From NCBI GenBank assembly GCA_965649825.1, contig OZ287703.1, positions 987,722 through 1,051,721 of the forward strand: 64,000 nucleotides of DNA, in the 5' to 3' direction. Origin of the DNA: Penicillus capitatus. Taxonomy: Eukaryota; Plantae; Chlorophyta. A program made the position numbers and the translations under genes. The notes beneath the pieces were generated by a model, which worked only from the letters and a program-made list of their open reading frames with translations, was not told the DNA's origin and did not search any database. Shown piece after piece: positions 17 to 44,336 of the stretch. Within the stretch, counting starts at the first letter, position 1; every line of letters begins with the position of its first letter.

Positions 17-2972
<2,956 letters not shown>

Positions 2973-7567: not shown

Positions 7568-7593
7568 AAAGTTGATTCTAGGCTGATGTTCTG

Positions 7594-20773: not shown

Positions 20774-21553
20774 ATGTCGGACAACACGTCACCTTCCTCC
20801 GAGAGTTCTTCCCCGTCGAGCTATTTCCCATTTGACGGCAGCTGCGACTGCAGCCGCGACGGGGACCTTACGCTCAACTTCGCTGACGGATCTTTTCTGA
20901 AGACTCACGCCGCGCTACTGAAGATGGCGTCGCCCACTTTCAAAGCGATGCTCACGGACTGCGCAGAGACTGGAACGGTGGCTTTGGAAAACACATCAAG
21001 AGAGGCATGGGTTCTCATCTTGAACTGCCTTCATCCAGGCACTCGACATCTCTTCTCGAACTTCGATCCAATCGCGCAGACAGACTTATTGGTACGAACC
21101 TTGTAAACGGGTCGACTTGTACAGCGATTGTCTTCACAGGCTGATGTACTGGAACAATGTCGAAAGTTCACGTTCGTCCACGTGCTCGAAGGACTCGACT
21201 ACATGATCGCCGCGGAGATTCCTATAAATATGAGGAACGACTATCTAAAATGTCCGACTGGTTTCGGTGATCCCGATGCTCAACACTTGCGTCTGTACAC
21301 TCTTGCACTTGAGCGTGCGAAGGTATTGCCTAGAACCGTTGACAGTATAAGTGAACATATTGGACGAGTTTTGAGTTTTGTCGCCGGATATGGACATAAG
21401 ACCTCCGGCTCGAAGGTTACAAACACTCCTCCTCCGTTTGGTATGATGCCGCGTAGGAGTATTCTAATGAACCTTTATACAAAAGGAAATAGTCGTTTTC
21501 GAGACAAACTCGTCAGACAGATGATGGAGAACAGTAATTACATGAGGGACTGA
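20774..21553 (+). CDS. BTB family protein B5 (exons 20774-21091, 21140-21553)
   Basis: Family motifs; phase-0 48-bp intron; exon 2 begins ADVLEQCRKF. Confidence 0.82.
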
Positions 21554-21939
21554 ATTCACATTCCTTCATCTATTAGCCTGGTATTCGATTCTCAAGTTGT
21601 GTGCGGTTTATGAACATAAATTCAAGCTGTGAAAGGCATTTGCAGTTCAAGTCCACATCGCACAACGCGTGACATCGTCGAAGACATGTCTGACTAGTCG
21701 TTTGCAGAGAATAGAGAATCCAATACATTGAAATCTGTAGGAAACGATGATGATCGCCGCAGTTGGTGATGTGACTGTCGACCGTGCCTGTGTGTAGGTA
21801 CAACAGTCCATCATGGAAATCCCAGAACGTCGCAACAGCTAATGTCAGAACTGTCATGTCATCGACGGGGACGCCTCTCTCGATCAGGCAGGCATAAACG
21901 CGGCCGCGTTTTTTCGTTCATCTGAGCTAACCGTAATGC

Positions 21940-22628
21940 ATGATGTCTGAGGCTGGCAAGACTTCTATAACGACTGCTTCCGAGATGACCTACTTCCCAT
22001 TCGTCGATGGCAACTGCGATTGCAGCCGTGATGGATATCGTTCTCTTATTCTCCAAGGGTTCCTCTCAGAAGACGCACGCCACGCCGCTCTCCTCGAGAT
22101 GGCGTTTCAGACTTTCCGAAGTATCTTGGGTGGGTGTTTGCGAGGACGGCGGTTCATTTTGGTGGAAGAACGTAAAGAGATATGTGGTTTGATATTTTCA
22201 GTCCTTTGCATCCGGCAGCATCCCTTACCGACGAACGAGCGCGTCGTCGGTTTAAACGATGTCGATCAGATGGTACGCATAACCTCTGCACCACTAAAGC
22301 TGTCAACTATTTGTAACTTGGTCTTTAGGCGGCTCTCCTGGGTCAAGCAAGAAGAGTCGCGCTCAATTTTCTCTTGAATTCTATAAATGCCGGAGGTGAA
22401 CGCGGCTTGTCAGCCCACGTTTATCTTACCGATTGTGAACGATCCATTAGAGGCAAACGTACGCAGAACGCAGTTTTGACTTGCCGAAGCAGAAAGTGTC
22501 TCCATGACGCGACGTCTTTGTCACATCCGAATCCGTTCTTGGTTTGCAGTTCAACTCAGTCCTCTGTTTGCAGTATCGCGTGTCGTAGGGGCGTCTGGTC
22601 ACTTCTTCTTGACATACGCGGCCAATAA
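21940..22628 (+). pseudogene. Degenerate BTB family copy B6 (intron 22273-22328)
   Basis: YFPFVDGNCDCSRDG and HAALLEMA survive, and exon 2 starts AALLGQARR. The intervening sequence is scrambled by frameshifts. Confidence 0.65.
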
Positions 22629-23113
22629 ACGGACGACTACTTTACGACAAGGATTGAAAGAACAGTGAGAAAGAGCGACGCAAAAGAGCAGAGTTCGACG
22701 AGACCTTGTCGGCGAAGCTTCAAACGGCTGTTGCGCTATCCCCGGCGATGATGGGACTTGAGGTTGCTGAGATATTGGCCAAACGTCTGGATACAGAACC
22801 GTTTTGCGCACGAATGTGAAGAACTTCTGTCGGACAAAGCCGCCCGCACGTAATCTCGTTGACGACGGTGTTTAAGTCCTTCCTCGTTGTTCGGTTTTCG
22901 CGAAGAAAGACGAAAGGCGCGGCGTTTCGTCACGTCATATACTTAAAAACTCTCGCAGCGAAAGCCTATTGCTCTCACCATCGGTCGCAAAATGCTTGTC
23001 GCTCGTTCCATACTAGAAAATGAAGACAAGTCCCGTCACAGCGTCGAACATTGAGCCCGTCCAGGACTCAGCATAAAAGGAAAAGATCATCTGGCCGACG
23101 GAGGAAGGTCCGT

Positions 23114-26100
23114 TCAGGCTTCGACGTCCGGAGGGTCGGAGATCTCCGGCTCTTCGGGCGTCGGACGTAACTTTCCAATCAGATGTTTAACTTTGTAGTC
23201 AATCCAGTGCATCAGAACGCAGAACATACCAGCATCGGCTGCAAAGCGCTCGTCTCGCTCCCTCATCTCGTATCTCAGGAACTTAGCTGCGAACCTGATA
23301 ATGTAGAAAACGAAAACAAAAAACAAGATAACATTCAGCAAAGCACACGCGACGGTAAGCAGCACACGAGTGAAGTTCTTTGGGTAGCTCTCGTCCTTGA
23401 GCATAGACGCTGCCAACGTCGTCGACAGTGACACGAAGAGAGACGCCAGTTCCATTCTGTTAAGGTCTTTGAAGTCCTCTCGGTACGGCTTCGCCAGAAT
23501 CTGAGCCAGGATAGCAAGCATGATGATGTATGCGACACCAGTGATCGGCAATCCGCTGTCAAACAGATGGGCGCAGAACACAAAGAAGGCGATGGTAACC
23601 TTCCTTGTTACGATAGCGATTTCCCAGTACACACGAAGATCCATTCTGTAAGAGCGGTAAAGGAATCCAGCGATCTGGTAAGCCCAGCCACGCTTGTAGA
23701 CGAGGTGCTGGAATGGACTCTTGAGGACGGAGATGAAGAGCACGATAAGGCCACCGTATACTGGACACACGAACGCAACGACCACTCCATAAACGAGTTT
23801 CCTGTGGTCGCCTGCGTAGCACTCCATCCTCGTGTCGACTGCCCAGTGCGTGTGCGTCACGTTAACTTTCGAGAAGTCTGCCAAGTCGTGCACGTCGACG
23901 CACAGGAAGACGCTCAGAGCAGTCTTTAGCACTGGCACGAGAGTGATATACCAGATGACCATCGCCGTAAGCAGACATCTCTTCGACACATAGCGGGGAA
24001 GTCTGTCGCTCTCGGGTCTCGCCGACTTCGTCGCCCAGAACAGGATCCAACAGAGAAACACGGCACAGGGGATGATGCACACGCTGACGACGAGCGCCAA
24101 CGCCGTCGGTTGCAAGGACAGGTCCTTTGAAGATAGACAAACGACGGAGCGTCGAATGCCGTCGGATGCGAGACCGCTAAACAATTCTGGAAAAAACACA
24201 ATAGTCGACAATCCTGGACTTTCGAGATTACGACCTCACCTCCGATTGTTGCCATAACGACGACCGGAAGCGCCCATTCGACGTCAAGGGAAGCCAGTAG
24301 AACAGTCGTTTGAACGTAACTTAGAGTGATCTGGAGAACAACGCGTTCAGTGCGAGATGAACGTACGGACTTGTTTGTACCTTAAACATCTCGACCGCCT
24401 TCCATTTTGCCAAGGTTTTTTCGGATGCGGGCAGTCCGAGGGCTTGAACCTATGGCACAATCATTCAGTAGGCGAGAAGTCGACGGTGTTCTGTGCCCAC
24501 TTCCGTCCGCGCGAGTGAAGACTCTCCTTCCGCCGATGAAGATGCCGTGCTCCGGTCACGAATCTGATGAGTGTTTCCGCGCAGAGCGCCGAGCGTGTCG
24601 TGCAGCGTGCCGTGGATCGTGGTGCTCGTCATCGCCAAGAGGATGATCGCCGAAGTCAGAATGTAGGAGACGTTGAAGAATCCCGTCAAGCACTCTTCGC
24701 ATTTCGATGACAGACCAGAGCCGAAGTCTTCTTCACAGGATCCACAAAGCGGACCCGTATGACCCTGTTGGAACAGAAAAGGAGAGATGATAAAACATTC
24801 GGAGACTGGAGAATGCGTTTTACTTCGGCACACTGAGCTTGTGCGTAGACTTCGATCCATTCTTCGTCAAAATCGCAGCTCGAGACCTCTTTGACCATGG
24901 CCTTCAAGTTCTCGGACCGGTCTTCAAACTCACAGGCAGAAGCTGGCAGGCATCTGTGAAGTTGATCCGAACAGGGCGTCATTTGCCAGTGGCCGTCGTT
25001 TGGCGTGATCGCGAGAGACTCGCAGTTGCCATTTTCGGGGCAGGGGAGGCAAACCTCCGCTTGTGGATGTAAGTTGTATGCCGTGGTGCCGCACTCCACA
25101 CAAGTTCCAAGTGTCGACATAATCTCGCCAACATAACAGCTTCGGACTTCGACGGTGACATCGACGTTTTCGATGGCCCCTTCTCCAAATTCTACCGTCA
25201 GCTTGTACTCTCCTGGAGGGGCGAAGCTTGTGACGGATCGAAAAGTGCCGGTCCATCGTTCCATTGGAACGATGATGGAACTGGACAAGAATGGCCCCGA
25301 TGGCGAGGACACGTTGGCTGCGACGGGGAGGTAGCTGATGGCAGGTCCCTGTCCTAGATCATCCAACAGTCTCACTCTTGCGGATGGTAATTCCGTGCCA
25401 CTGCTATATCCTTGTATCACACAGTTCTCGCCTCCGCTTATGCAAACAGAGTTGTTGGCATCCTCAATCGTCAGCTCTGCAGTTGCGGCGTATGTCGCGA
25501 CATCATGCCCGTAAGAGACAGCGGTATTGGCTTTCCACGACGAGCAGATGTCGTCAACTGATTCAAGGTAACCGAGGGCACGCCATTCCTTCTCCGCGTA
25601 GAAGCTCAGATCGGAATCTGGCGAAGCGTCGTTGCAGCGAAATCGAATAGCTTCTTTGTAGCCGGCGAAGACTGCTCCTCCTCCGACCCTCGCTTCATTG
25701 TCGCGGAACTGTGTTTCTACAAGAGCCATAGTGGGACAGTCGGTGCTGTTTGTCAAACATTCTTTGTTCTTTTCGCTGCAGACGAAGAAGAGTCCACCTA
25801 AAACCAAGTGTTGACAGAAGTATCATTCTTGCAAATCGATTGCCTACCTCCCAGATCAGCCGCATTATTCTCAAAGCGGCTACGGACGAACTGCAAGGCC
25901 AGACTCTGCTCGAATTTGGCGTCTAAGAGAACTGCACCACCATTGCCTCTCTTGGCCGAGTTCTTGCGGAACACACAGTTGGAGCACAGAATTGACGAGG
26001 ACCCGAGGCCAAGCACGCCACCGCCGTCGACTTCTGCCTCACAATGTGTTATGGAAAGATTGATCCCCTTCAAATGAGATCCATCCAACCAGATCGCTCC

Positions 26101-28882
26101 CCCGTTCATCGATCTTCCTTGAACAATGCTGGCGTCATTCACAATGATCGAGCTGTTTCCTGATGCCGATGCAAAACCGCCTGTGGCACCTGCGGAGCTC
26201 AAGGAGAAGTACGACTGTGTGATTCTGACAGTCGAGTTCACCGCGTACACGAAACCGCCGCTTGTGAGTGCGCCGCTGATAGTCGCATTCGTGCGCTTCA
26301 GCTTCACGCGCGAGTCCTCCGAGTACACGAAACCGCCGCTTGTGAGTGCTCGGTTGTTTCGTGCATCCGTGTCGACTGCCTTGACCACAGATCTCGACAC
26401 GAACATGAATCCACCCAACGTTGCGCTGTTATTGGTCGCGGTCGTGTGGTCCGCTTTGACCTTCGCGTCCCTTGCGAATATCAATCCACCTTGGTTCTTG
26501 GCGACATTTCCCATCGCACGGATGCTCGTTAGCGACACCGTCGATTTCTGTGCGTCCATAAATCCACCGTCGCCTGCTGCTTCGTTGTTGATGACGTCCG
26601 TGATCTCTAGGACCACGTTTGATCCAGCTGCATACATGACGCCGCCGTCACTCGTTGCGTTGTTGCGCATTGCACTTGTATACTTCAGGCTGACATTTGA
26701 GCTCTCAGCCCGCAAGAACGCGCCATACGATGCACTGTTGGCCGTGGCGTTCGTGTGCGCCAGCATCACATTCGAGCTAACTGCCATCAGAAATCCGCCG
26801 CTGATCTGAGCGTCGTTGTTAATCGCGTTTGTGTGCCTGAGCGTCACGTTCGATGCTTGAACCCATACGCATCCACCATCCGTTTCTGCGATATTGGCGA
26901 TCGCGTTTGTGTGCTCGATCGTTGCGATTGAGTCCTCCACGTACAAGAACGCGCCAGACGATGCTCTGTTGGCCGTCGCGTTCGTGTGCGCCAGCGTCAG
27001 TCTCGAGTTCTCTGTCTGAAGGAATCCGCCGTTTGATGTTGCGCGATTGCCAATCGCATCCGTGTGCTCCAGCTTCAGGTCAGAATTTCGTGCATACATG
27101 AACGAGATCCACTGCGCCTCGTTGTCGATCGCGTACGTTTCGGTTAGCTTCACCGTCGAGTTGTCTGCGTAGATGAAGCCGCCAGATCTTTTCGCGCTAT
27201 TGGCGGTCGCGCTTGTGTGGTCTAACGTCACATTTGAGACCCTGACGTCCAAGAACGCGCCATAGGCAGCTCTGTTGGCCGTCGCGTTCGTGTTCTTCAG
27301 CATCACTTTCGAGTTCTCTGCGCCGAGGAATCCGCCACGGCCATGTGCCGTATTGTTCAGTGCTATTGTGTGCTTGAACTCCAGCTCTGAGCCTTCCGCG
27401 TAAACGCAGCCACCCTCATCAGACGCGACATTGTCGTTGAACTCGGAGCGGAACACGGAAATCTTCGACGCTTCGGCGAGGATCACGGGTCCTGTAAGGC
27501 CTTCGTTTGCAACGAACGTGCACTTCTCCACTTTGACTGACGACTTTGTCGAATGAACACAGTGATGCTTCGTCTCTTCGTCGATTCTTGTACTCAGAAC
27601 ATTCCTTCGGAACGATGCATTCGACAGTGAAATGTCGCCTTCTAGGATACGAATAATGGTGAGGTTGTTTCCGGAAGCGGCGAATCCTCGCAGCTTGGTA
27701 CTTGACGAGATGTGTCCATAGAACAAGGAAGAATGCTGCTCATCCGCGTCGGTGACTCTGTTCCAGTAGCAGGTGCAATTATCCAGTCGGTTTTTTTGTG
27801 CAAGGTAAACACCGCAGGCTTCGCCTGAGCAGACATTCTCGGAGATCTCAACTTCGACCATCTTCAGTTCGGAACAGGATGGGGAAGACATTCGGAGTGC
27901 CGACGCTGCAGTCAGGTCGTTTTGTCGAAACGCTAAACGGCGCAAAGCCACGAGACCAGGAGTATCTTCAGTGTGGCACGCTGTCACCTTGATTATCGAC
28001 TGGGCTTCGTATGTGCCGTCGAATGCGCACCTCTCGATGATGAGATCGACAAAAGTAACGTTCATGGACCTACGAGCGAACAGAGAATAACTATCTATCT
28101 CACTCAAAGTTGTCTTACTCTACGAGAAAGAGTCCGGAGTTCTCGTAAGGACATGTGAATCTTGTCTTTGTGGTCGATCTAGAGAGGACGTCGTCAGGAG
28201 AGTCGGTGCTTTCGACTTGGGTGGCGAGGGTCAGTTGCCGCGGAATGGTGACACGCGACGACGGGCGCACAACGTCTGTCACGTTGAAAGAGATGATGTC
28301 TCCCTCTTTGGTGCAGTCGACGATCTTCTGCAAGTCGTTGTCAATTTCTCTTAGGACAACGCTGCTGACGAGCCACGTCTTGCCGTCTTCAGACGTGTAT
28401 CTGTCTTTGGCGTTTCTCGACAAGGTACATTTGGAACCTAACATATTCAGAAGCCATTTGAATGCGGCGTCTGCGCGAGACGTAAGAAGAGCCGAACCTT
28501 TAGCGGTTTCTCGTCTGGATGTGTCAGACTGCGACGGCGCGTGCTCTTCGCTGACCCTCTATAGACAGAAGACACGATGGTAAATGTCCGTGCCGCTGAA
28601 TGGCAGCAGGCGAATTCGAGACTTACATCTTGAGGGAGTTTTGTAGCGAGGTCGGCTGGCGATTCAGACGGTGCAGCTGGTGTGTTATCGTTCATTTCGC
28701 CTAAAACACAAGACAGCATAGTTGATGTGATGCGACGGAGCCAGCGTTGGAAAACCGTCCACAGCAGAAGCGGCATCTGGCGTACGCAGCAACGCGCGTT
28801 GAACAGCGCGCGTATGTCCGACTCCCTGCGCAAACGAGCAGAAGAGCAGACAGAGCTTGAGGCAAGAAAGAGAAGTTCGCAT
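23114..28882 (-). CDS. Large surface/membrane protein: signal peptide, Pmp-like/pectin-lyase-type GGA..N beta-helix repeats, Cys-rich region, multi-pass TM C-terminus; multi-exon
   Basis: Signal-like MRTSLSCLKLCLLFCSFAQG. A 769-aa ORF with about 17 GG(F/A)xxxxxSxVxLxxTxAxxNxA repeats. CVECG..CLPCPENGNC..C..GHTGPLCGSC. KITLSYVQ motif and several hydrophobic helices in 23114-24190. 5' exon boundaries are approximate. Confidence 0.8.
26120..27430 (-). repeat. Intragenic 75-78-nt coding tandem repeat array
   Basis: TGTTGGCCGT(C/G)GCGTTCGTG recurs near 26737, 26968 and 27273. GTACACGAAACCGCCGCTTGTGAGTGC recurs near 26245 and 26323. Confidence 0.85.
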
Positions 28883-30663
28883 CGTGTGGACGTAAAACGA
28901 TCGCAGAAGGAAACGTGCAGAATGATACGTTCGTTTTTGTCGATCATCATCAGACGACTGCTGCGACGACTGAAAAGACGGACGGATCTTATTCTCTCTA
29001 CAGACATGACGCGTCATGGATAGTCTGAGAGACGGAAACGTCTTCGCCGAACCGACTAGCGATGTCAACAGAATGACGACAGTCGAGGCATCAAGATCGA
29101 AGACGCTGTGATCTTTATCCTGTCTGTCCTTTCCTTTCGCAGAGGTTGCAAGCATAACGACGAATGCCTCGTCCAATGTACTCAGCTACGCTAGATGACG
29201 TTTCCTGTAACACACTGATTGGACTGACAGATGCCGTTCTGCAGAGGACTGAGTGCAACGAAGCTATCTTCGTCGCTTCTCAGCTGACCAAAGACTCCGT
29301 ACTGCACAAGGACGTGCGATGTCTTTAGATTTTCCTCGGCGATGATGCCGTCAGAGGTGTGTCGCGAGGCTGAAGGCTACAGAACAGATTGCATGCCGTA
29401 TCCGCAAGCTCCGATGCGCATCGACACATTCTTCTTATGATTGCCTCAAAAGTGAGTCATCGTGTTCAAAATTCTGCATCCGTTTCTCACTCTCCGTTGT
29501 ACTGATGGTTCAGATACTGGAAATCGAAGAATCGAGTCGGTTTGAGTCTCTCAACCGTAGCTGACGTGCAGCTTGTAGTTAACTGTCTAAGATCCGAATG
29601 TAGTTTGAAGTGACAGTGGCGATGATCAGAAGCTGTGGTTAAGCCAAGTTGGATCTCAATGATTTCACACCGATGGACACAGAAAACTCGATGTCGGCCA
29701 GTTCAGAGAGGGGTATTATCGGATGTGATATCGTCAGGGTTGTCGCCTAAAGCGGTGAAGAGCACCGGAGCAATGAAGACATCAATGCGGAGACATACTC
29801 TTCAAGCACTAGACAATAGAAGCAGCCAGCGACCGTCGTTTTGTTCAGAAGAGTAGGATGAAGACCTTTGGTCTTCGATGATGAGCTCGGCATCAGATGA
29901 GGTTCCACTGAGGAATAAATGCACACTGTACCATGCTTTGTGTGGCCGAGAGGCCGTGGTGGAAGCACACCTTTCTAAACTGTGTTCTCTGATCTTATGG
30001 GTACAGCACCGGACGTCTTTGGACACAGTGTCTTGACCGGATGGCGTTGCTTTAGGTACTTCGTCTGTTGCGTCGTACGCCGAGAGTCGTTTCGGACGAG
30101 AGCGGAGCAAGCAAATGACGCAAACAGACAAAGGCTCGATACGGAGAGAGATATCGCCGCCGCCGAAGCAACGGCAGAGGAAGAAGACACGGGAGAGTAT
30201 GATGCGAGGCGTCATTTCTATGTGCTGCCTGCGGCTTCTAAACGCGTGAAGTGACTTGTGCTTTCTTTCTCATGCCCTGGTATTTACAGGACACTGGACA
30301 GCTGGTATAAACAACAGAAAGTACACGTTCAGCGAATGCATCAACGATCAAGCATTGGACGCTGGTACTTAAGCTTCGAGCGTGTTAGGTGCCAATGTGC
30401 CGCCACGTTCTGTGTTTTATGCTACCTGTGGCGACGCTAAGCCAGAAACACGCGTCATTCCAAACAATCAACATTCTGAATTGGATCAGCACTACACGAC
30501 GTTTCCAGTTCTTCTTGGCATTTAGGAAACAGGTCGCCAGGTTTCAGTTCGATGCAAATGATAAATGAAATTTGGTCAGATAGTGAAGGAATCGTCAAAG
30601 ACTTATTCAAAGCTGGGCGTTTAGATAAATTGCGTAGTCACGGGGAACTTTTATTGGCGTAAC

Positions 30664-33600
30664 TCACGGACGTAAGAGTTTCTTGAGGACCCTTCGCGTC
30701 GACTTGGAACATGAAAGAGCACTTGCAACACAAACAAGGTCAAAAGGCGTTTCTCCACTGTCGTTTGTTATGGTCTTCGAGGCCCCGGCATCCACCAGAA
30801 CCTGAAAATGCACTATTACACTATAAGATGCTGTTTCTGACGTGCCTTGGCTGTCTCTAACGCGCCGTTCGTCGATGCATCGTGAAGTGGAGTATCTCCA
30901 AACGCATCCGTTGCGTCGAGATAGGCATCTTTTTTGAGTAACAACTGTAGAAGGCAAAGTGAAAGAGAAGACGAGAGGGAATAGGCAAAAGCACCTTTGT
31001 AACCTTTGGGCTCGTTCTGGTTACGGCAATGTGAAGCGGTGTCTGTCCGATACTGCTCGCGCCGTCAACGTCGGCTCCGTGTTTGAGGATAATCTGCCAG
31101 TCGACAGTTTACGCCAATGCGGCAAGGACGTATATGTGCAACAAACCTCGACAACTTCGGCGTCCGAATAACGTGTTGCAAACAGCAGAGGCGTCCATCC
31201 AATGATATTGGCATGGTTGACTTTAGCTCCGTGCTTAAGGAGGATCTGGCGATCGAAACGTTCTGCCGAAAGGCAACGAAGCGGATGCGATACTCACCTC
31301 GATCATTTCGGCGTCTGCTTTACGCGCTGCAAAAAGCAGAGGCGTCCATCCTTCGTCTATGGCCTCGTTGACTTTAGCTCCGTGCTTGAGGAGAATCTGG
31401 CAAACGACAGACAGCTTCTGCCAATGAGGCAACGACGATGTTTGGTGCGCGACCCGACCTTGACCATTTCGGCTCCTGCGTAACGCGCTGCAAAATTCAG
31501 CGGCGTCCATCCATCGTTTATAGCTTGGTTGACTTTAGCTCCGTGCTTGAGGAGAATCTGACAGTGAACAGACGACTTCTGCCAATGAGGAAACGACGGT
31601 AAGTGTACAACAGACCTCGACAACTTCGGCGTCCGAGTAACGTGCTGCAGAAACCAGAGGAGTCCATCCATTGTCCTTGGCCTGGTTGACTTTAGCTCCG
31701 TGCTCGAGGAGAGTCTGACAGTCGACAGTTCTGTCATCGAGGCGACGAAGTGAATGCGTTACTCGCCTCGACCACTTCGGCATTCGAATGACGCGTTGCC
31801 AAAAGCAGAGGCGTCCATCCATCGTCTATGGGCTGATTGACTTTAGCTCCGTGCTCGAGGAGGATCTGGCAAACAAGAGACAGTTTCTCTCATCAAGGCA
31901 ACGACGTTTAATGCGTAACCGACCTCGACCACTTCGGTTTCTGCGTAACGTGCGGCAATATGCAAAGCAGTCCATCCATCGTCTATGGGCTGATTGACTT
32001 TGACTTCGTGCTCGAGGAGGATCTGGAAAACGCCAGACGGCTTTTGTCATCGAAGCAATGGCGTTTAATGCGTAACCGACCTCGACCACTTCGGTTTCTG
32101 CGTACCGTGCTGCAATATGTAGAGCCGTCCATTCATCGCCGTTAACTGATTTGACGTCTGCTCCGTACTCGAGAAGGATCTGGCAAAAGATAGACAGTTT
32201 CTACCTATAAGGCAACCAAATGAACGCGTTACGCACCTCCACCATTTCGGCGCCTGCATAACGTGCCGCAGAATGCAGAGGAGCCCATCCGATGTCGTTC
32301 TTTTGGTTGACATCCGCTCCGTGTTCGAGGAGGATCTAAGAACCAACGCTTGAGCACACGATCAAAATCGCTTTGTAGATTCACCTTCGCCACCTTCGCA
32401 TGTCCTTTCCCCGCTGCCAGGTGCAAAGGAGTCCATCCATCTTCGTTGACTGCATCGACGAATGCCTCATATTCCAGAAGAACCTTCAAGGCGTGAACAG
32501 AGAAATTTGATGGACAGAGACGAAGCATCTAGACTCTGTCATCCAGAGTGGATTCAGCCCAGAATAATACCTCAGTGCATTCTGACGTGTTGTAAAGCGC
32601 CGACCAGTGCAACAGAGCGAACCGTTCCGATTTCCAGTACCATGGCATTCGAACGAAGGACTTGTAGACGGAATCTGGATCCAGTGCCTGCAGAAGAGCT
32701 GCTTCTAGCTTCGGGGCATCGTCATCTTTTATACAGTGATATGCTTCCTACAGAACCGTAGCGCAGTCCAGAATGATCTTTATTGTCAATTCAACCTTAT
32801 TCAGCTCTTTCTGAGATAGCTCCGTCAGCTGTTTGCGTTCCTCTTCGATTCCCTGCCGTTCGGACTTCTCGTTTTGCGGTTTATCATCCACAGGCTCATC
32901 CGCTGCTGAAAATCCCACGCCATCTTCGTCATCGTGCGAAGGTTCGTTCATAACTTCCGACGAATCTGGCACCTGCACTAAGAGATCAGGACAATAGAAG
33001 GAGATTGATCGAATGGTTCACCTCTTCTTCGTCGATTATTTCGAGAATCCAATCTCTGAACGCGTCTATTCTTGTGTAGACAGAAGGCGATGCATCATCG
33101 CAGTCTTTGGATCTCACGGACGTCACACCGATGAGCAGGTCGCGTTCTGGACTCCCCTCCGATACGTCTCCCTCCGATCTGTCAGGAATCAACAACAGAC
33201 CGCCGGAATCTCCTACGACAAGGGTAAATCAGCAGAAAGCGTCATCTCATGCCATTCAGAACCTTCGCATGCGGTTTCTCGCGAAAATCCGGCACAAATC
33301 GAGTGACGGTTGACGGAGTGTCCCAGAAGCTTCTTGCAGACATGATGCTTCACATGTACCAGGCCATTCGTCATCTGCAAAGAACTTGGATGCTTTCCGT
33401 TGTTGCTCAGTCCCCAACCGAGTGCGGCGAAGAGTTTGCCATTACGGAATTCGCCTCGCTGAGTGTCCATCGACGGCAGCGAGCGATTCGCTTCCTTGTT
33501 TAATTTGACGACGGCGATATCGTATCCGTCGTTCACGTCGCCCGTCCAAGATTCAGGCCAATAGCTTTTCTCTCCCTTCAGTACCTAGCAACACGCATTT

Positions 33601-34095
33601 CGGCAGGAGAGTAAACAAACGTGGACATGTGTTACTTTATTGGAGTCGTTTGCATCAAGCGTGTGGACACCGCAGCGAACAATCGGATGTCGGCCGACAC
33701 TGTGCGGAGAGGCGGGGTCGACACAGTGTGCTGCAGTAATGACCCATTGCTGTCGAATGAGCACTCCGCCACAGCGGCGAAGTCCATCGTCTTGTGCAGA
33801 GAGAATACAAATATAGGGGAACCGTCCCTCAGGTGCCACTTCCGCATCCTGCAAAACGAAAAGGCTACGACACTACTGGAGAGACGTACGTGTTTACGAT
33901 AGTGGAGGGACTTGTTTCCCATTCGGAGTCTAGCTTTCCCGACTTTTCTGAACAATCGCCCGTGTCGGACTGGAGTGCTAACCGATAGTCGTTCTTACTC
34001 TGGATATGCGGATTGGCGTCGGCGTAGAAGAGCAGCACGGATGGCAAGAGGAGCAGAAGTGCAGTAGCTTTGGTCGGCAACGAGGAGAGCGACAT
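30664..34095 (-). CDS. Signal peptide + trypsin-like (S1) serine protease + acidic linker + about 12-13 ankyrin repeats, one spliced gene
   Basis: Catalytic motifs TAAHC, DIAVVKL and spliced G|DSGG. In-frame GT-AG splicing links WILEIIDEEE to VPDSSEV..ELNK, then EAYHC..SECTE, then VLLEYEA..GWTPLHLAA. Stop TGA at 30664-30666. Confidence 0.82.
30846..32483 (-). repeat. Tandem array of 11 exon+intron units (99-nt phase-0 ankyrin exons, about 150-157-bp period)
   Basis: Each exon reads xLLxHGAxVN....GWTPL..AARY..AEVVE. Central introns resemble each other. Confidence 0.9.
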
Positions 34096-34249
34096 GTTTT
34101 GAAGAATGCGAAGGCGACGGCTGTTGAGGCATCAACAGCCGTTTAAATAGACCCAGCTCCCGCCATTCGTCACGATGGCTTTGCAGTAACCACCGCGACG
34201 ATTGGCTGGACAACGCACCAAGAGAGTAACCACCACGCGTCTATTATGG

Positions 34250-35030
34250 TTTTGCATCAAGTGCCTCCAGTTCTGTCAAAAATCTTCTAAACAGAGGTTT
34301 GCTAGAAGAGGCTCTGTGCTTCATTGAATGCGTTCTCACATTAGCATTCCCAAAACGCCTTCACATCTACTTTCTTCGGACATCGTCCAATCTTTGCTAA
34401 TACCAATCGCTTTGCAGTCCCAACGTTTCCCACTATGATCAAACGCAAGGGAGGATGTTAGGAATGTGAAGGCACAGTGTGGTACTCATCTAGCAGGTAA
34501 CGTTCTGCAGGACAGTCATGGGAAAAAAGATACGACTCCAAGATTCCATTCACTGCCTGAAACGAAGTTCTGAAAACCTAAAGACTGGGAATCCGTGTTC
34601 ATCGTGTCCCGGCAGAATATAGAGCAGAAGGAATAAGAGCAAAGAAACAAGGCTCGGCCAGAAGAACCAGCCCAATCGAAACTGTCAGACCGGATATTCA
34701 CAAAGTGAATGGCAGACAAAGCCACAACAAAATCCCAAGCGCCTCTCGTTCTGGTTAAGTACATCGTTGTCGTACGGCGTTGGGCCGAACAGATTTCCAC
34801 AAAATTGCCCAAGAATCGTTGCGATGCTGTGGAGGCATTTCACTCCTCTCTTCGGAGCACCAAACAGAAAGAGTGCTCGTAGTCCAGTTTCTCCAGACGA
34901 TGCCCGTTGGAAATCGAGACCAGGTCTGACAACTGCCCGCTGTAGCATTCGTTGAACGAGAGCTCCTTCACCTCGTGACAGGTTTGCTGAAGACAGTCTC
35001 CAGGAGCGCAACGAGCTGCTCCAATTGAGG
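34250..35030 (-). pseudogene. Decayed coding-like sequence of unknown family
   Basis: Long near-open frame interrupted by scattered stops and a frameshift (e.g. EVKELSFNECYSGQLSDLVSISNGHRLEKLDY). No family recognised with confidence. Confidence 0.25.
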
Positions 35031-35065
35031 ATCAGTCGCCAACCTTCCGTCTTAAACAACTAAAC

Positions 35066-35180
35066 GTTCGGTGGACGAGAGCCTTGTCTTCGTATAGCGG
35101 AGACCGTACGTGCCGTTAACGGCGTGCGCCCAAAAGCACAAAGAAACGAAAACGACACTTGTGCAAAACTTCATCATCAT
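35066..35180 (-). pseudogene. Orphan copy of the patatin signal-peptide exon
   Basis: MMMKFCTSVVFVSLCFWAHAVN matches MATKFCTVVVFVSLCLSAHAVN at 49291-49176. The splice donor is deleted and patatin exon 2 is absent. Confidence 0.75.
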
Positions 35181-35891
35181 ACTGCTCGCTGAAACGACAG
35201 CGACGACAGGTGGATGCAAGACGTATAGGCGACGGTGCCAGTACGCGCTGCGTCCGGCGTCTTCTGTTCTGTGAATCGTTCAGCATGACGATGTCTGCCT
35301 TCATGGAAGATTCCTCATTTGGAACCAGAAACCAGCTAACCGCGAAATAAACCTTCTTCCTGGGGTCGGTTGAGACGTACCTGTGGCGTTTGCCGCTGTC
35401 TATACCCGTCTAAGGACCTGGAGAATACAGGTATACCTGATGAGGCAAAGCTCCGACGTTGTATCGCGCTTAAACGATGCCCAGTCGCAAGAGGGAAGTG
35501 CAGACCATGCATGCATGGATGTATGATCCTCAGACACAGCCATGACAGGTTTGTCTACCGAAGACTGAAGCATCACGTTTCGTGTGATATGTATGTGTGA
35601 GAAATGGACTGGTGGGTCATCATTGTAGATGGACGTATCATGAAGTCATTCCTGAACATCTGACAAGACATCCCGGCCGTGTTGATCACGATCAGATGTC
35701 GCTGCCCTACGATGTGATTGATGCGTTGTCATCTTATTCCGCACCGCGTCGCAACAGTTTAGGTAGCTGACGTTTGTCGCCAGAAGAAATAAAAACGAGT
35801 ACAAAAACGAAAACGATTTCACGTTCCTTTGATTTTTGACCTACCCGTAGTACTCTGCCGAACGATTTTTTCGGTTTGCTCGAGTGGCGCC

Positions 35892-36684
35892 ATGGCAGAC
35901 AACAGCTTTACTTTGGCTTCTTTTCCCTTCGATGGCACCTGCAAGTACAGTCGCAACGGCGACACGATACTCAAGTTCAGTGACGGCTCTTACTTAAAAA
36001 CGCACGCCGCTCTACTGAAGATGGCATCTCCTGTCTTCGATTCGATGCTGACTGACTGTACAAACACGAAGACACTTGTGTTGGAGAAGACCTCTCGTAA
36101 AACATGGGTTCACATCCTGAACCATCTCCATCCAGCAGGATCACTCGTTTTTTCCAACTTTGATCGCGTCAATGGATTCGCCACGGATCTGCAAGAGGAT
36201 CACACATACGAGATAAAAGCGAAGTGCGACGCTTTGTCCGATATCCTCGAACAGGCAAGAAAGTTCAAGCTGGATTCTCTGTTTGCTTTCATGGACGATC
36301 TGTTGTTTTCTCTTTTCCCCAAAGAACTGGATTCCAACCTTGCACAGAGGCTTGCTAATAACAACCGCTCTCACGGCCGTCTCTATAACCTTGCACTCCG
36401 ATTTGAGTCAGAATTGCCTAAGACCAGTGAGAAAGTCCGTGGTAACATTATTAAGTACCTGCAGAATACCAGCCAATGCCGCAGCTGTGGAGCAAGACGC
36501 TTCCAAAGTTCATCATATCGTCAAAGAGTAAGAATAATAATCTACTCTTCTCGTTTTAGGATGTTTTGTTTAGAATCAGTCCAGTGAGGCCGAGAAGAAT
36601 TTTGCAGTGAACCTCATCGATGAAGGAAGTCAGGAATTCCACAAGAAGCTGATCAAGGATCTCATAAGCTCTATTCTGTTTTGA
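35892..36684 (+). CDS. BTB family protein B7 (exons 35892-36527, 36574-36684)
   Basis: Family motifs. No intron at the canonical position; a 46-bp phase-0 intron near the 3' end restores the C-terminal LIDEGSQEFHKKLIKDL motif. Confidence 0.78.
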
Positions 36685-39084
36685 CTTGTGTTTCGAACCT
36701 CTCCTGAGTGAATCTCGCAATTGCGTCGACACTTTAGATGCATCGTTTGTCGAAAATTAAGTTTCTGTGAGTTTTCTGAAGTGCGGGTTTTGCAGAAACA
36801 TGATCGAATACAATTCACATTGATAAGACGTGTTAGCAATCTGTGTCTGCGCTTTTGAACGTAATAGCTGTTGGTTGCCATTGCCAGGAATTGACAGGTC
36901 ACTTGATAGGAGGTTCCTACAAGCTGCTCCTACTTATGTCCAAGATTAGAGATCATCCGGCGTAGAGTGGATTTCGGAGAAGGCCCTAGCCGTCGTGTCC
37001 ACCTATCTTCATAGCCACAGTGCTTCATCGCACAGCGGTTTTGAGCACCTATGCTATCTCTTTAGTAATCTGTCATTTCTGGAAGTGAGCTGTAGCAATA
37101 CCAAAAATCGTCCAAGCGGTCGAACAAGTGATTTCAGATTGTCGTATGTGTGAAGAGCTTACTTGCACTAGTGATCGTTTAATGGAGTAGATAAGAAATG
37201 GCATCAAATAGATAACAAAGTGCAAAACTCTTTCCTCTCGTATGAGTTGAAGACGGCGTGTTCCTGGATCACTCGTGAGAACTTTCGTTGTTGATTGAAT
37301 TCGACTGAAAGATTTGTTGTGTGTTTTAAAGTCGTCAACGGGTTTATGATCATCTTTGAGATGTGCTGACTCGCAGGTGTCAGAGACGCAGAGAGTGGCA
37401 ATACATGTGTGAGGTACCTTCAGAATTGCAGTAGTCTTCTCGATAAACAAGTTTTGGATCAGTGCCATCAAGAACGGCAGTGTCATCTTTTTAGGGAAAC
37501 AGAGGAAGACATACTGGAAGGCCTGTTCTCCCCTCAGGCGTTTCTCTATAGGTGATATCGTCTTGTCGTTGTCCAGAAATCACACAGTCTGTTCTGAGCA
37601 AAGACGATCTGAAGTAAGGAAACGGATGATGCATTCTGTCGAATCGAGTGTTGCGCCATCAGGCAGACAACAACCAGTAGTATTCACGATACGGTGAGAG
37701 CGAGGCAATCAACAGATCCCAAACCCTAATACTAAAAGCTGCAAGACACCTAAAGTTCTTTTCAGACCACGAGGGCTCGACGTGCCAAGACTTGATCGAA
37801 CGAGACTATCAATCCTTAAACGCAGCAACGATACATCTGTTTAGAAAGATGCCATTAAGGGTGGTTTCTGGGCAGTGCTTTGTTCTTTGAGATATGTGGG
37901 AGACTATTGCGACGCTTCAGACCAAGATGGCCATCGATTCTATCTTGACACATAGATGAACCCATTCCGACCATACAAACGGTAAGAACACGGTCATTGC
38001 CAGATTGGGTCTTATCGATCCACACGTCCCTTGCGATCTGGACGTTCTGTTTGGCCTGACGGATCACAAATTTAAAGAGACAACGAAGCACGAAGCAAGT
38101 CTCGTAAACAAACGAGTAATTATACGTTGAACCCGAGGAGTCACCTTAAATACTTAACCCATGTGAACCTCTATCGTGCATGTGATCATCGGTCACTCGT
38201 CCTGGAGCGAATTGTTTCTAATACGACAATGGTACTAGCCACTAGGGGACCACTAGAGTCCCAATCCACTTCGAAAACCATATGTAAATTTAGCCACTAT
38301 AAGAGGCATGAGGAGACAGAAAGCTCTTACGTCGTCTATTACAAATAGCGTTCTTCTTTCATTAGCAACGATTTTCATCCTTCACGGTTCACGTCACATC
38401 CGTCCCCGTCGAAAGCACCTGTCGCTTACACAAGGACAGTTGCTGAGTGAAGAAACGACGTCCGGCATGAAACGAGATGAATGTTCCGTCCACCACGCCA
38501 CTATCCCATCTGTCCCAAACTTCGAATGTCGTACATGGCATGAATGGATGTGTAGAACGATGCAGCTACGCCATCAGCTGCGTGACCCCAGACGGACAGG
38601 TCACCACTTCTGTCGTTGTCTTCCACTGTCGAGCCAGTTAGCAAAAAGACAGACTTCGGTTGAAAGCCGAATGGGCGTGTACAACGTCTGGCACGTTCCA
38701 AAGAATATTCGTCCACTTTGCGATGACGCCTCGTATCGTACTAGAGAATAAAACTTGCAGGCAGTTTCGTTGCGATCTTTTTCAGACAGTGAGGCCCGTG
38801 CGTCTATGTATCTTCTCGGAACCCGTCCTTTCTCTTAACCTAAAAGTAAGAACCATTCATCTTTCCACGTTGACTGTTCAAATGGACGGTTGCTTTTAGG
38901 TCAAGAGAGACCGCACGTCTCTTATCCCAAAGGGGACAGCGTGTCATGTGCGGCTGACCTCGGACTCAGCAAGTCATGACAGTAACTAGAACGTCACAGC
39001 ACATCGCACCTCCGACGTCGTTGGCAGAAACAATAAAGCGACGCGATAGGGGAATTGATAACCTATCAAATGCTGACGTGTATC

Positions 39085-39105
39085 CGACCTTGTCCATAAA
39101 TACTC
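39085..39105 (+). promoter_or_regulatory. TATA-like CATAAATA about 65 bp upstream of the B8 start (also upstream of B9 near 41292), preceded by TGACGT
   Basis: Position and conservation between the B8 and B9 promoters only. Confidence 0.3.
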
Positions 39106-39158
39106 TTAGGAAACGGCGGTTGATATTTGTCAGCTGCCCGAGTTGTTCGAGTCCTACG

Positions 39159-39926
39159 ATGACGGACAACACGTCGACTGCCGAGAAGAGTTCTCTTCCG
39201 GACTATTTCCCATTTGACGGCACCTGCGACTACAGCCGCGACGGCGACCTTACGCTCAATTTTGCCGACGGTTCTTTTCTGAAGACTCACGCCGCGCTAC
39301 TGAAGATGGCGTCGCCCACTTTCAAAGCGATGCTCACGGACTGCACAGAGACTGGAACGGTGACTCTTGAAGAGACATCGAGAGAGGCATGGGTTCTCAT
39401 CTTGAACTGCCTTCATCCAGGCACTCGAAATCCCTTCTCGAAGTTCGATCCTTTCAGACAGACGGACTTATTGGTAAACGAAACTAGTGGTCTCAGTCAT
39501 TACAGAGATATTCTATAGGCTGAGGTGTTGGGACAATCGAGAAAGTTCAAGTTCATCCCTGTGTTTGAACAAGTGGATTACCTTATTTCCACGAATGTTT
39601 CGAAGAAATTGCCTCATAGTCAAAGCCTTCCAACTGGTTTTAGCGATCCCAATGCTGTGCACCTGCGTCTTTACAGCCTTGTACTACAGTTTGGGACGGA
39701 GTTGACGACAGCCGCTGATGATATACTTAAACATGTCGGGGCAGTTCTGCACTGTTTTATCACCAAACGTGGATATGATGTTTTCGGCTCGCAGTTTTCC
39801 TCAAACTCTTATCATATGCTGCCGAGGAAGGATGTTCTGATGAACCTTTTAGAGAAGGCCGATGTTGGTTTTCACCAAAAGCTCTTAGCATATCTGATGA
39901 AGGACTGTAGTTACATAAGGGGCTGA
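39159..39926 (+). CDS. BTB family protein B8 (exons 39159-39473, 39519-39926)
   Basis: Family motifs; 45-bp phase-0 intron; exon 2 begins AEVLGQSRKF. Confidence 0.82.
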
Positions 39927-41355
39927 ATACATATTCGTACACGAGTTGTCTTGACTTTTGCTATTTTCTCGTTGCATGTTATAGATGAGGATTATCTGGG
40001 CTGCTCAGAATATTATCAAGTTCTTATCCGCATCGACAACGCACGAACTTCGACAAAGACATGTTTTACGAATCGTTTGAAGAAGAAGAGAGTTCAAAGC
40101 GTTGAAATCTGAAGGCGAGCGCTAGTCAACGTCCATCTAACCGTTCGCAGTTCCCACTACTTTTTCATCGTGAAAAAGTAGTGTCGCGATGGCAACGTCA
40201 AATCTGCTTACAAATACAAGTGAGATTCACAGAGTGAAGATGTTCTGTGTTTTCGAAGGGCTTATTTTCCCAGCCTCAGTAGCCGGGAGAGTGATGGGGC
40301 TACTAAAGTCGTCTCTGCAGCTTCGGCGATCTTGCCAATTTAAGCTATGCGAGTAGTTGTACACAGAGTGGAAAATGAGAAACATGACGTTCGACAGTCG
40401 GTAGTTTTGTGCTTCGTTAGAGTCTTTCAAGTTTGACAAGTATAACTCAATCATGCGTTTACTTTTTGAATGAGCGTCGCGTTGTCTAACGAGCAATCGA
40501 CTTGTTTGCTATAGTGCACGCCGAATGGAAGAAACAGAAGGACAAGGCAGTTGCGTCATCTTTTTCACCAAATGAGCCTATTATCTTAGGAAGGAGTTTC
40601 GTGTCGCGTCGATGTTTCTGGCGACGTCCGGTTTGAGAATACTCAGTCTTACATCCAACACAACCGACGAAACTTTTCTGCACAACAACTTACTCAGAGA
40701 TTCCAATACACTTCTCTGAAAAACGTTTCGCCTAAATTCCAGTCCACATATAGCACAGCTTACAATGATTAGTCACAGATATCCATTGCCTTTGGTTCGT
40801 TTTTCCGTTCACAAAGCAGGTATAGTGTTATAAAATGAAGGGATGGTGTCATATACAGCAATTCCGTCCAAAGTTTGTACTTTTTGATAGAAGGAAAAAG
40901 GACGACCTTCAAAAATAGCCATCCGTCACAGCAAGATACGACGCATACCAAAAAAGATCAACAGGCTTCACCTTCTCGAACGACGATTCAACAGGAAGAT
41001 GTTCGAACGAAATATATCTCTGTAAATCTTTTGAAACTCGTCTATTCGGAGAACGGTCCTTCCATATCGCCCCGCTTCGTGGACCGACGCCTTTGACGCA
41101 GTGGAAACCACACGTCTTTTATCAGGGAGGGGGTAGCTCTCGCCGTGTGCTGCTGATCTCAGACTACAACAAGTAACAGTGTCCAAGTAGGTCATAACAA
41201 ATCACGTCCGCCGTCGTTGGCGGCGTCAATGAAAGCAACGCGATACGGAAGTTGATTACCTATCAAATGTTGACGTGTGTCCGACCTTATCCATAAATAC
41301 TCTTAGGAAACGGCGGTTGTTCTTTGTCACCTACCCCACTTGTTCGAGTTTTAAG

Positions 41356-42153
41356 ATGACGGACGACGAGTCGACTGCCTCCGAGAGTTCTTCCCCGTCG
41401 AGCTATTTCCCATTTGACGGCAGCTGCGACTACAGCCGCGACGGCGACCTTACGCTCAATTTTGCCGACGGTTCTTCTCTGAAGACTCACGCCGCGCTAC
41501 TGAAGATGGCGTCGCCCACTTTCAAAGCGATGCTCACGGACTGCACAGAGACTGGAACGGTGGCTTTGGAAAACACATCGAGAGAAGCGTGGATTCTTAT
41601 CTTGAACCGCCTTCATCCTGCTGTTCAGTCATCCTTCCCCGATTTCGATCCGTTTTTGCATATGGAATTCCTGGTAAGCGAGCTTACGGATTATGTACAT
41701 CAATATAAGAAAACCTGATCCTAGGGTGATGTTCTGAAACAGTGCAGAAAATTTAAATTTGATGCAGTGTTTGCACCTATGGACTATGTCGTTTCTACGA
41801 GAATCTCGGAGCGAATTGCAATTGGAGGGCTTCCAAGTGCTTTCAACGAAGAAGATGTTTCGTGCGCAAGTCTCTACCGTCTTGCACTGCAATTCGAGAC
41901 GGAAATGCCGAGAACCATTGATAAAATACGTGCACATATTGTCAAGATTCTTCATCCAATCAGCGGCCTAGACGGATATGTCGATTCGAAGAAAAGCTTT
42001 AAAGTCGACGGGGACAAATTCTTGAGAACATATACTCGCTACACAAAGCCACGTAAGAGTAAACTTCTGGAAGTTGTCAAGAATGCTAGTGTCGATTTCT
42101 ACCACAAACTCTTGGCAGATTTGATGCAGAGGTATTCTCATTTGGCGGATTAA
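41356..42153 (+). CDS. BTB family protein B9 (exons 41356-41673, 41725-42153)
   Basis: Family motifs; 51-bp phase-0 intron; exon 2 begins GDVLKQCRKF. Confidence 0.82.
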
Positions 42154-43032
42154 ATTGAAATTTTTGTGTCAACCACGATGACGCAATCGATTCTCGGGTT
42201 GCATATTGTGAATGGAGATTATTTCGGCTGTTAAAAGCATTCGCAAGATCTGTTCCGCTTCGCACAACGCGTGACTTTAACAATGACATGTTTTTCTAAT
42301 CGTCGCAGAGAAGAGAGAAAAGTTAGAGCTCTGCAATCTGTAGAGGAGCACTACTGGCGATATCCCCAGTCAGCGATGTGACCGTCTATCGTAGCCGTAT
42401 ATGGACGCAATAGTCCATCATGAAAACACATACGTCACGACCGTCGACACCAGACCTCCCATGCAGCTGACCGAGATTCCTGTCTGTTTTATCAGACAGC
42501 GACGGCGACAACACTTTCTCGGCATATCTGTCTATCCTCTGGTCATAATCGGTTTGCGGTTTTCGCCTGTTTGCCTCATGACTGTGTCAGACAATCTTTC
42601 TACAGATTCCTTTTTCAAGTCGGGTTCTCATGCATCATCTTCTCTCATTGTCTTGATTGACGTAATTTTGAAACCATTGGAGAGAACTGTTTGCGCAATC
42701 AGCTTTCCACGCGCGTCAAAAGACCTATCACCCAAGAAGAGAGCAGAATTGGCGCGACTGTCGCATGTCCAACGGCCGCTCCTGGGAAACACAAACATTG
42801 TCACGTGAGAGTTTTCTCTCCAGTGAGCGCAAATCGCATAAGCCATTTGACGGCGCACAGGTTTACATTTACGTATCCGGACGCTTTTCTGACAGACGAT
42901 AACAGCACGTCTTTTTTGCGCCACGTCCTGGTAAGCACGACTCTGAACAGTTCGTTAACAACGACAGATCAGATATCCATTCGTCAGGAAACGTGGATGT
43001 GACGTGCACAAACCTCTGCCTCACGTTTCAAC

Positions 43033-43880: not shown

Positions 43881-44336
43881 TCGATAAATGCAAAAGCCAT
43901 CGTCTGTGACGTTTACGCATCCAGTTGTATTGTATTGCGGAGACAGGCTGTGCGCTTAATGATGCTCTTCTTTATACTTTTGATGCTCACGAACTACTTC
44001 ATTTCGCTGAATGAAATCTCCTGTGTGTGAAATGCTCGTCATTACAGTACCAGACAAACAAGGATTCCTGTAAGGCTTAGCGTTCTATCGATTTCGAGTG
44101 TCGATGTCAGGGCTCTGGACGCCAGGCGATTCGGAACTTCTGCAAATTAGACCGCCACATCGAGTGCATGGCAGGAAAAAGAGGCGACAGTCGACCCTTC
44201 CGCCGACCGTCTGACGACGCATCTGAATAATGAATGAACCGGGAAGCGGAAGAGGTGCGTTGACTGTGCCGAAACGACACTTAGTGGGAACGACGTTTCA
44301 CTTCACCGCCCAAACTGAGATTGTCCGAGACACGCG

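Follow-up and report, generated by a model that had tools for sequence, protein, structure and literature searches.

We analyzed a 64,000-nucleotide stretch of the Penicillus capitatus genome (contig OZ287703.1, positions 987,722 to 1,051,721 of the forward strand; hereafter the window), which carries a cluster of two-exon genes encoding BTB-domain proteins, and found that three of these genes, B5, B8, and B9, join near-identical exon-1 cores to deeply diverged introns, second exons, and flanks. On comparative sequence evidence, this arrangement most probably reflects repeated short-tract interlocus (ectopic) gene conversion that homogenized the 5' parts of the three genes, a reading to which we assign a probability of about 85%. 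By the same comparisons, B9 is a gene of the B2 lineage, a chimera of a B8/B5-type 5' part and a 3' part of the type found in B2 and in S2c, a gene of a second species.

The window is eukaryotic DNA of ~50% GC and contains 14 copies of the BTB family, all on the + strand (Table 1). Family introns are GT..AG, 45-56 nt long, and in phase 0; those of B5, B8, and B9 measure 45-51 nt and lie in phase 0 because the first exons are 318, 315, and 318 nt long. The family is rare and lineage-restricted. No NCBI or UniRef protein matched it, a word-indexed search recovered 6 proteins among 5.8 billion, and an exhaustive representative search recovered 64 at E <= 1e-10. The sole annotated relatives are spliced gene models of Caulerpa lentillifera with 22-28% identity, which are colinear with B5 over its full length; that this end-to-end alignment runs across the exon junction supports the two-exon gene models.

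Comparison sequences were drawn from ENA metagenome assemblies. Exact look-up of the B8 exon-1 open reading frame (ORF) in public assemblies gave no match, and a neighboring 147-aa ORF was used instead. A 944-kb contig (ERZ25074695:ctg340476) that is ~98% identical to the window provided further copies of B5 (L001 and L002) and of B7-B11 (L006 and L008), and two contigs from a second species (species 2; L003 and L004), ~75% identical, carry the genes S2a, S2b, and S2c. Exon 2, the intron, and synteny identify S2a as the orthologue of B8, S2b as that of B1, and S2c as that of B2/B9. The B5/B8/B9 structure is also present in the independent ~98% identical assembly (L001, L002, L006, and L008), which represents the same organism or a very near relative, and is thus not an assembly artefact.

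A 66-nt string occurs exactly at only three sites, one in each first exon (B5, 20897-20962; B8, 39279-39344; B9, 41479-41544), with 0 expected by chance. Over the whole of exon 1, nucleotide identity was 0.89 for B5-B8, 0.84 for B8-B9, and 0.85 for B5-B9, as against 0.44-0.49 for the introns and 0.51-0.62 for exon 2, and the exon-2 proteins of the three genes were only 38, 37, and 32% identical, with indels in two loops. Both the long shared exon-1 runs and the diverged, indel-rich exon-2 proteins had been noted in a preliminary description of this region, and both hold. From the upstream region through exon 1, the intron, and exon 2 to the 3' flank, B5-B8 identity was, in turn, 0.68-0.72, 0.89, 0.49, 0.62, and 0.63; the corresponding B8-B9 values were 0.80 (last 200 bp upstream), 0.84, 0.44, and 0.56 through exon 2. 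B5/B8 homology extends ~700 bp upstream, and both flanks of the homogenized B5/B8 tract remain at 49-72% identity. Core tracts of 160-210 bp with still higher identity (95-99%) are nested in the first exons (Table 1), that of B5/B9 reaching at least 95% over 211 bp. A 22-nt upstream motif, AAATGCTGACGTGTATCCGACC, with a TGACGT core, lies ~85-90 nt before the ATG of B5, B8, and B9 and nowhere else in the window. The matching region is conserved in S2a (as read in translation), and the motif is a candidate promoter or 5' untranslated region (UTR) element carried along by conversion.

Divergence at synonymous sites (dS) followed the same partition. For whole exon 1, dS between paralogues was 0.196 (B5-B8), 0.226 (B8-B9), and 0.325 (B5-B9), whereas dS to orthologues was 0.78-0.97 (B8-S2a, 0.905; B9-S2c, 0.970). 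Within a 72-codon exon-1 core, paralogue values were 0.156, 0.107, and 0.234 for the same pairs, compared to 0.70-1.43 for orthologues (0.89 and 1.43 for the orthologue pairs), and paralogue and orthologue synonymous divergence in the core differed with Fisher p = 1e-4, 2e-8, and 1.5e-5. For exon 2, dS was 0.73 for B8-S2a and 0.76 for B9-S2c versus 0.82-1.94 among B5, B8, and B9, and amino-acid identity was 58% and 55%, respectively, versus 32-38% among the paralogues. Non-coding sequence was affected as well, the 5' UTRs of B8 and B9 being 80-94% identical compared to 45% for B9 and S2c. Because synonymous sites are homogenized, the exon-1 identity is not attributable to purifying selection on the protein. 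In species 2, S2a and S2c differ by an exon-1 dS of 1.13 and are thus not homogenized, indicating that the homogenization events are specific to the lineage of the window. Between orthologues, dN/dS (non-synonymous relative to synonymous divergence) was 0.13-0.26 for exon 1 and 0.40-0.41 for exon 2, and dN was 0.29-0.31 for exon 2 versus 0.12-0.25 for exon 1. Overall exon-2 dN/dS was 0.4-0.6 and did not exceed 1; by these estimates the rear half is the faster-evolving part of the protein, yet overall without demonstrable positive selection.

Separate phylogenies of the two exons, which the preliminary description had called for, were strongly incongruent (neighbor-joining [NJ], 500 bootstraps). 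The exon-1 tree grouped B5, B8, and B9 in 81% of replicates, B2 with S2c in 99.8%, and B9 with B2 and S2c in only 0.8%; in the exon-2 tree, the B9, B2, and S2c group was recovered in 100%, B5, B8, and S2a in 99.8%, B8 with S2a in 85%, and B5, B8, and B9 in 0%. The exon-1 tree also united B5, B8, B9, and S2a (84%). This clade marks the shared exon 1 as the B8/S2a type, and B9 was therefore the recipient. Thus the trees conflict and identity extends to synonymous sites, the reverse of the congruent trees and identity at non-synonymous sites alone that had been named as evidence against recombination.

The mosaic nature of B9 that had been proposed is borne out. In a self-BLAST of the window, 41104-41618 matched B8 (38907-39418) at 83.8% and B5 at 82.3%, and 41732-43470 matched B2 exon 2 and its 3' flank (8033-9744) at 75.9% over 1760 bp; B9 exon 2 and its 3' flank run on into a duplicated block of 3.4 kb whose other copy holds B2 exon 2, B3, and B4. 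We located the breakpoints by a two-breakpoint likelihood scan on informative sites with 200 permutations. The donor-type tract spans ~170-280 bp upstream of the ATG (proximal promoter and 5' UTR) and the first 235-258 nt of exon 1. Inside it, 129 of 141 informative sites were B8-like rather than B2-like and 149 of 177 were B8-like rather than S2c-like, compared to 36-41% B8-like sites outside, and none of the 200 permutations reached the observed likelihood. The 3' breakpoint, best placed between 41590 and 41621, falls inside exon 1, 60-80 nt upstream of its end at 41673, and the tract is bounded on this side by sequence of the recipient lineage, an exon-1 tail and intron of S2c/B2 type: the proportion of synonymous differences (pS) in the tail is 0.08 to S2c and 0.65 to B8, and intron identity is 0.73 to S2c and 0.44 to B8. 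Within the tract, donor patches alternate from a B8-like 5' UTR to B5-like codons 8-25, then B8-like, then B5-like sequence, a pattern characteristic of repeated conversion over short tracts.

The comparison of alleles covered three haplotype copies (for B8, the window, L006, and L008). Six sites at which B8 of the window differs from L006 and L008 cluster at 39363-39380, and there the other copies carry the B5 state at 6 of 6 sites and the B9 state at 5 of 6. Several allelic differences in B5 likewise equal paralogue states. Allelic variants in these three copies therefore match the states of paralogues, as ongoing conversion produces. New exon-1/exon-2 combinations, which the preliminary description had suggested looking for in haplotypes, did not occur among the three copies, and B9 exon 2 was invariant between copies. 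A 36-bp patch in the B9 copy of L008 (13078-13136) differs by ~10 substitutions and by a +1 insertion, which disrupts the reading frame beyond codon 20; among the compared sequences, none matched as its donor. Dense differences between the window and L001 upstream of B5 (20443-20568) gave mixed B8 and B9 matches and no clear tract when a conversion donor was sought.

Other recombination is evident in the cluster. In B7 and B12, a homogenized tract covers the promoter and the first ~208 nt of coding sequence, in loci whose remaining sequence is 70-85% identical (83.5% for the loci overall and ~70% in the 3' half), and by this profile the pair is a second case of 5'-centered homogenization. Along the segmental duplication that relates B2 exon 2-B3-B4 to B9 exon 2-B10-B11, identity climbs stepwise from ~76% to 88% to 98-100%, a gradient that suggests an old duplication in which B4/B11 were later converted over the whole gene and B3/B10 in part. 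A 33.5-kb unit that reaches from B4 to B10 is tandemly doubled in contig ERZ25074695:ctg340476, where its copies lie 33,475 bp apart, and is single in the window, flanked by 97.8%-identical direct repeats, B4 and B11 (10573-11656 and 44044-45127), at a spacing of 33,471 bp. This difference resembles the outcome of unequal homologous exchange of B4 with B11, or of two haplotypes having been joined by the assembler. With conversion, this copy-number difference, and pseudogenization, the locus is recombinationally active.

We also asked how the exon border relates to the protein. Pfam BTB (PF00651) scores were just above the 20.5-bit cutoff (B5, 25.6; B8, 26.2; B9, 21.3), and the B5 match covers residues 31-117, across the exon junction at 106/107. 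An AlphaFold (AF2) model has three strands followed by helices, in line with the three-stranded sheet and five-helix core of the BTB fold, with a confidently modeled helix at 103-115 that spans the junction and the next helix at 119-132; its mean confidence (pLDDT, predicted local distance difference test) is 68.7, with residues 53-72 below 50, and the two indel-bearing exon-2 loops coincide with low-confidence parts. A profile search against the PDB gave only weak matches, to the BTB domains of CP190 and KEAP1 (E 0.03-0.2), and exon-2 peptides had no credible Pfam match at E up to 10. At its start, exon 2 carries a conserved motif, DVLEQxRKF, common to the whole family and Caulerpa. In the model, the exon border thus appears not to be a BTB domain border: exon 1 would encode roughly the first three quarters of the fold, and exon 2 the remainder plus ~110 aa of predicted helices without a known family.

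Several points weigh against gene conversion as set out here. Synonymous sites are few (50-90 per comparison), and the NJ trees come from short alignments. The timing of the B5-B8 duplication relative to the species split is poorly resolved (exon-2 dS 0.82 vs 0.73), which implies that part of the exon-2 divergence of B5 is lineage-specific acceleration rather than greater age. Content of G and C at third codon positions (GC3) is 0.65 in exon 1 versus 0.42-0.48 in exon 2, which is compatible with GC-biased conversion without proving it, and exon-1 GC3 is also raised in the unconverted species-2 genes (0.57-0.58), making it weak evidence. A Foldseek search of the mediocre AlphaFold model against the PDB gave no match with E<1. 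Finally, beyond the 5' end of the B9 tract there is homology to neither B8 nor B2, and the first event behind B9 may have been a single unequal crossover or partial duplication.

This last point bears on the alternative that survives best, in which one non-allelic homologous crossover or partial duplication of B8-like and B2-like copies made B9 and conversion merely polished it. The B9 junction is in frame within homologous exon-1 sequence, unequal exchange is evident in the doubled 33.5-kb unit of the other assembly, and the B2-type homology upstream of the tract that would prove two-sided conversion is missing. Against such an origin, B8 homology ends ~170-280 bp upstream of the B9 ATG, short of the B8 flank and of the ~700 bp seen for B5/B8, donor patches alternate within the tract, short allelic tracts occur in B8, and the homogenization of B5 with B8 between diverged flanks is left unexplained. 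We therefore regard it as an unlikely account, though one to be taken seriously.

Far less probable is intron-mediated exon shuffling, in which whole exons exchanged through the phase-0 intron would give new module combinations. In all copies the intron lies in phase 0, and the preliminary description, which offered 'exon swapping or conversion' as the process, had placed the boundary close to it. Identity does drop within ~80 nt of the intron, but the breakpoint lies inside exon 1 and not at the intron, the exon-1 tail and intron of B9 are of recipient type, and the exon border splits the predicted BTB fold, which together argue for short-tract conversion and not for shuffling; the exon combinations are, moreover, identical in the three haplotype copies. 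Conversion is thus the half of the proposal that stands, on the homogenized synonymous and non-coding sites and the conflict of the trees, and swapping is the half that is wrong or unproven. Its picture of a constant scaffold module with a variable specificity module is likewise a hypothetical functional reading.

A third possibility is recent duplication of B5, B8, and B9 followed by extremely rapid divergence of their second exons through positive selection or local hypermutation. The non-synonymous rate of B5 exon 2 is ~2.4 times that of B8 or S2a, and B8 exon 2 is hypervariable between haplotype copies (39519-39923, L006:11212-11616, and L008:11212-11619), which differ by 5.7-8.5% where most flanking sequence differs by 0-2%; pN/pS, the polymorphism analogue of dN/dS, was 1.65, 1.17, and 0.73 in these comparisons, values not significant alone, and in one copy a short stretch in a loop is frame-shifted and then restored. 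This possibility is nevertheless hardly tenable, as divergence in the non-coding intron and 3' flank equals that in exon 2, the second exons of B8 and B9 are each closer to their own species-2 orthologue, and B9 exon 2 and its 3' flank continue into the 3.4-kb block common to B2-B4. Plain purifying selection without recombination, with a conserved BTB exon and a drifting C-terminal exon, would fit the stronger exon-1 constraint between orthologues but has a negligible chance of being right, given exon-1 synonymous divergence 4-13 times lower between paralogues than orthologues, a homogenized B8/B9 5' UTR, and conflicting exon trees. Capture of the 5' module by a transposon was also considered and rejected, because the 3' junction preserves the frame and falls inside homologous coding sequence, which points to homologous recombination.

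Under gene conversion, the history of these genes may be reconstructed as follows. Two old lineages, B5 and B8 with S2a on one side and B9 with B2 and S2c on the other, would have separated before or around the species split. After the split, repeated conversion would have copied the promoter-proximal region, the 5' UTR, and most of exon 1 among B5, B8, and B9, giving near-identical exon-1 cores over deeply diverged introns, second exons, and flanks. B9 would have gained ~400-530 bp of B8/B5-type sequence and retained its original sequence from the exon-1 tail through the intron and exon 2 to the 3' flank. Tracts presumably end where similarity becomes too low for heteroduplex formation, the rear half evolving ~three times faster at the protein level, so that a constant front and a variable rear would be self-reinforcing, and their centering on 5' ends may reflect promoters being the most frequent sites of breaks that initiate recombination. 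The products may function as BTB proteins, possibly of a Cul3-adaptor-like kind, with specificity residing in the helical half at the C-terminus.

Several further features of the cluster and its surroundings were recorded. B7 and B12 lack the intron position usual for the family and seemingly have a different, C-terminal intron. The B2 intron holds ~670 bp of extra sequence (7360-8032), 100 bp of which resemble 3146-3244, and B3 has ~135 bp extra (9741-9876) right after the start of exon 2, beginning with the palindromic GGACAGCTGTCC; the extra sequences in these two pseudogenes are possibly small mobile-element insertions. The two large species-2 contigs have the same gene order and differ in retroelement content between the B1-like and B2-like genes, with ORFs for reverse transcriptase/endonuclease and integrase, and they are probably haplotypes or a recent segmental duplication. 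Elsewhere in the window, 3.1 kb of an ABC-transporter gene occurs twice, 13.8 kb apart, with 91% identity between the copies (8-3137 and 13821-16972), and the closest annotated relatives of the ABC-transporter ORF are Caulerpa lentillifera gene models (41-42% identity). Judged by best hits, the BTB family and this ORF point to a probable ulvophyte, perhaps bryopsidalean, green alga, and a fungal origin, to which the 50-nt introns and the F-box-LRR and YVC1-like genes had seemed to point, was rejected on account of these Caulerpa matches. An ankyrin-repeat ORF adjoins a tandem array (31074-32376) of eight units of 151-161 bp that share 61-83% identity; unit length is not a multiple of 3. Two long ORFs, of 769 and 583 aa, have no Pfam match, and the former contains internal repeats of 230-300 nt; a gene with F-box-like and leucine-rich-repeat (LRR) regions and a patatin-like ORF are also present.

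Table 1. Positions of the BTB genes, homogenized tracts, and other features. Coordinates refer to the window unless a contig is named.
Feature	Position	Strand	Details
B1	5023-5862	+	BTB copy
B2 pseudogene	~7001-8440	+	exon 1 ~7001-7319, frameshifted; exon 2 ~8032-8440, stop and frameshift; paralogue of B9 3' part
B3 pseudogene	~9426-10263	+	
B4	10866-11592	+	
B5	20774-21553	+	exon 1 20774-21091; exon 2 21140-21553 including stop; 243 aa
B5 intron	21092-21139	+	48 nt, GTACGA..CACAG, phase 0
B6 relic	~21943	+	
B7	~35892	+	
B8	39159-39926	+	exon 1 39159-39473; intron 39474-39518 (45 nt); exon 2 39519-39926; 240 aa
B9	41356-42153	+	exon 1 41356-41673; intron 41674-41724 (51 nt); exon 2 41725-42153; 248 aa
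B10	43033-43877	+	
B11	44337-45063	+	
B12	~50003	+	
B13	60137-60895	+	
B14, truncated	~63525	+	
S2a, species-2 orthologue of B8	L003:10112-10884		
B5/B8 homogenized tract	20817-21104 (B5) / 39199-39488 (B8)	+	at least 90% identity
B5/B8 core tract	20885-21046 / 39267-39428	+	at least 95% over 162 bp
B8/B9 core tract	39203-39371 / 41403-41571	+	at least 97% over 169 bp
Donor-type tract in B9	minimal 41186-41590; maximal 41080-41613	+	~400-530 bp
Recipient-type (B2/S2c) exon-1 tail and intron of B9	41614-41724	+	assigned by intron identity and tail pS
Upstream motif AAATGCTGACGTGTATCCGACC	B5 20689-20710; B8 39068-39089; B9 41265-41286	+	exact in B5 and B8; two mismatches in B9
B7/B12 homogenized tract	35486-36099 / 49597-50210	+	at least 97% over 614 bp; -406 to +208 of ATG
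Segmental duplication, B2 exon 2-B3-B4 / B9 exon 2-B10-B11	8033-11656 / 41732-45127	+	
769-aa ORF	25798-28107	-	
F-box-like and LRR gene	45818-47441	+	
583-aa ORF	53317-55068	+	
YVC1/ion-transport-like ORF	55807-56883		
Patatin-like ORF	61865-62899	+	

Interlocus conversion is classically known from the globins, opsins, MHC, KIR, and resistance-gene clusters. The BTB genes resemble these cases of conversion and partial concerted evolution in that, within a bounded tract, paralogues resemble one another more than orthologues do, homogenization extends to synonymous and non-coding sites, trees are mosaic, polymorphism is shared by paralogues, and tracts of a few hundred base pairs end where similarity drops. 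We find no mechanistic difference; the mechanism is a textbook one, and what is new is its occurrence in this lineage-restricted gene family and organism, with consistent 5' placement of the tracts (B5/B8/B9 and B7/B12). In the Drosophila genes lola and mod(mdg4), a common BTB 5' part is joined to many 3' exons by alternative or trans-splicing. The product logic is alike, a constant BTB N-terminus with variable C-termini from one cluster, but each gene in the window has its own promoter and exon 1, and constancy would arise at the DNA level by conversion and not by RNA splicing; signs of shared-exon splicing were neither looked for nor encountered. BTB substrate adaptors that pair a conserved BTB domain with a fast-evolving recognition domain have expanded in particular lineages, as the MATH-BTB proteins have in grasses and nematodes (PMC4091423; BTB survey, PMC1257465). 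Shared with these are the clustered, lineage-specific genes, the conserved BTB part, and another half that evolves several times faster. Unlike them, the family in the window has no MATH, Kelch, BACK, or other recognizable second domain, its binding to Cul3 is putative, and BTB conservation among its paralogues would stem from conversion as well as selection. Our literature search on BTB expansions in Caulerpa and on BTB gene conversion found nothing specific.

The cluster provides a well-bounded example of partial concerted evolution for which outgroup orthologues and multiple haplotype copies are at hand. Phylogenies based on the BTB domain only would mis-assign orthology in this family. A bolder idea, which we consider improbable, takes the genes as a recognition system that is adaptive and 'constant-variable', at work in a siphonous (coenocytic) green alga. 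Conversion would then be favored for keeping the BTB dimerization and ligase-docking half interchangeable, permitting heterodimers, and diversifying or balancing selection on targets such as viral, endosymbiont, or non-self proteins would push the C-terminal halves apart and maintain their polymorphism; the divergence of B8 exon 2 between copies, at a pN/pS of ~1 or more, is a hint in this direction. If the variable halves are indeed recognition modules, the cluster would be a candidate ubiquitin-adaptor system under rapid evolution, in an algal lineage that has received little study.

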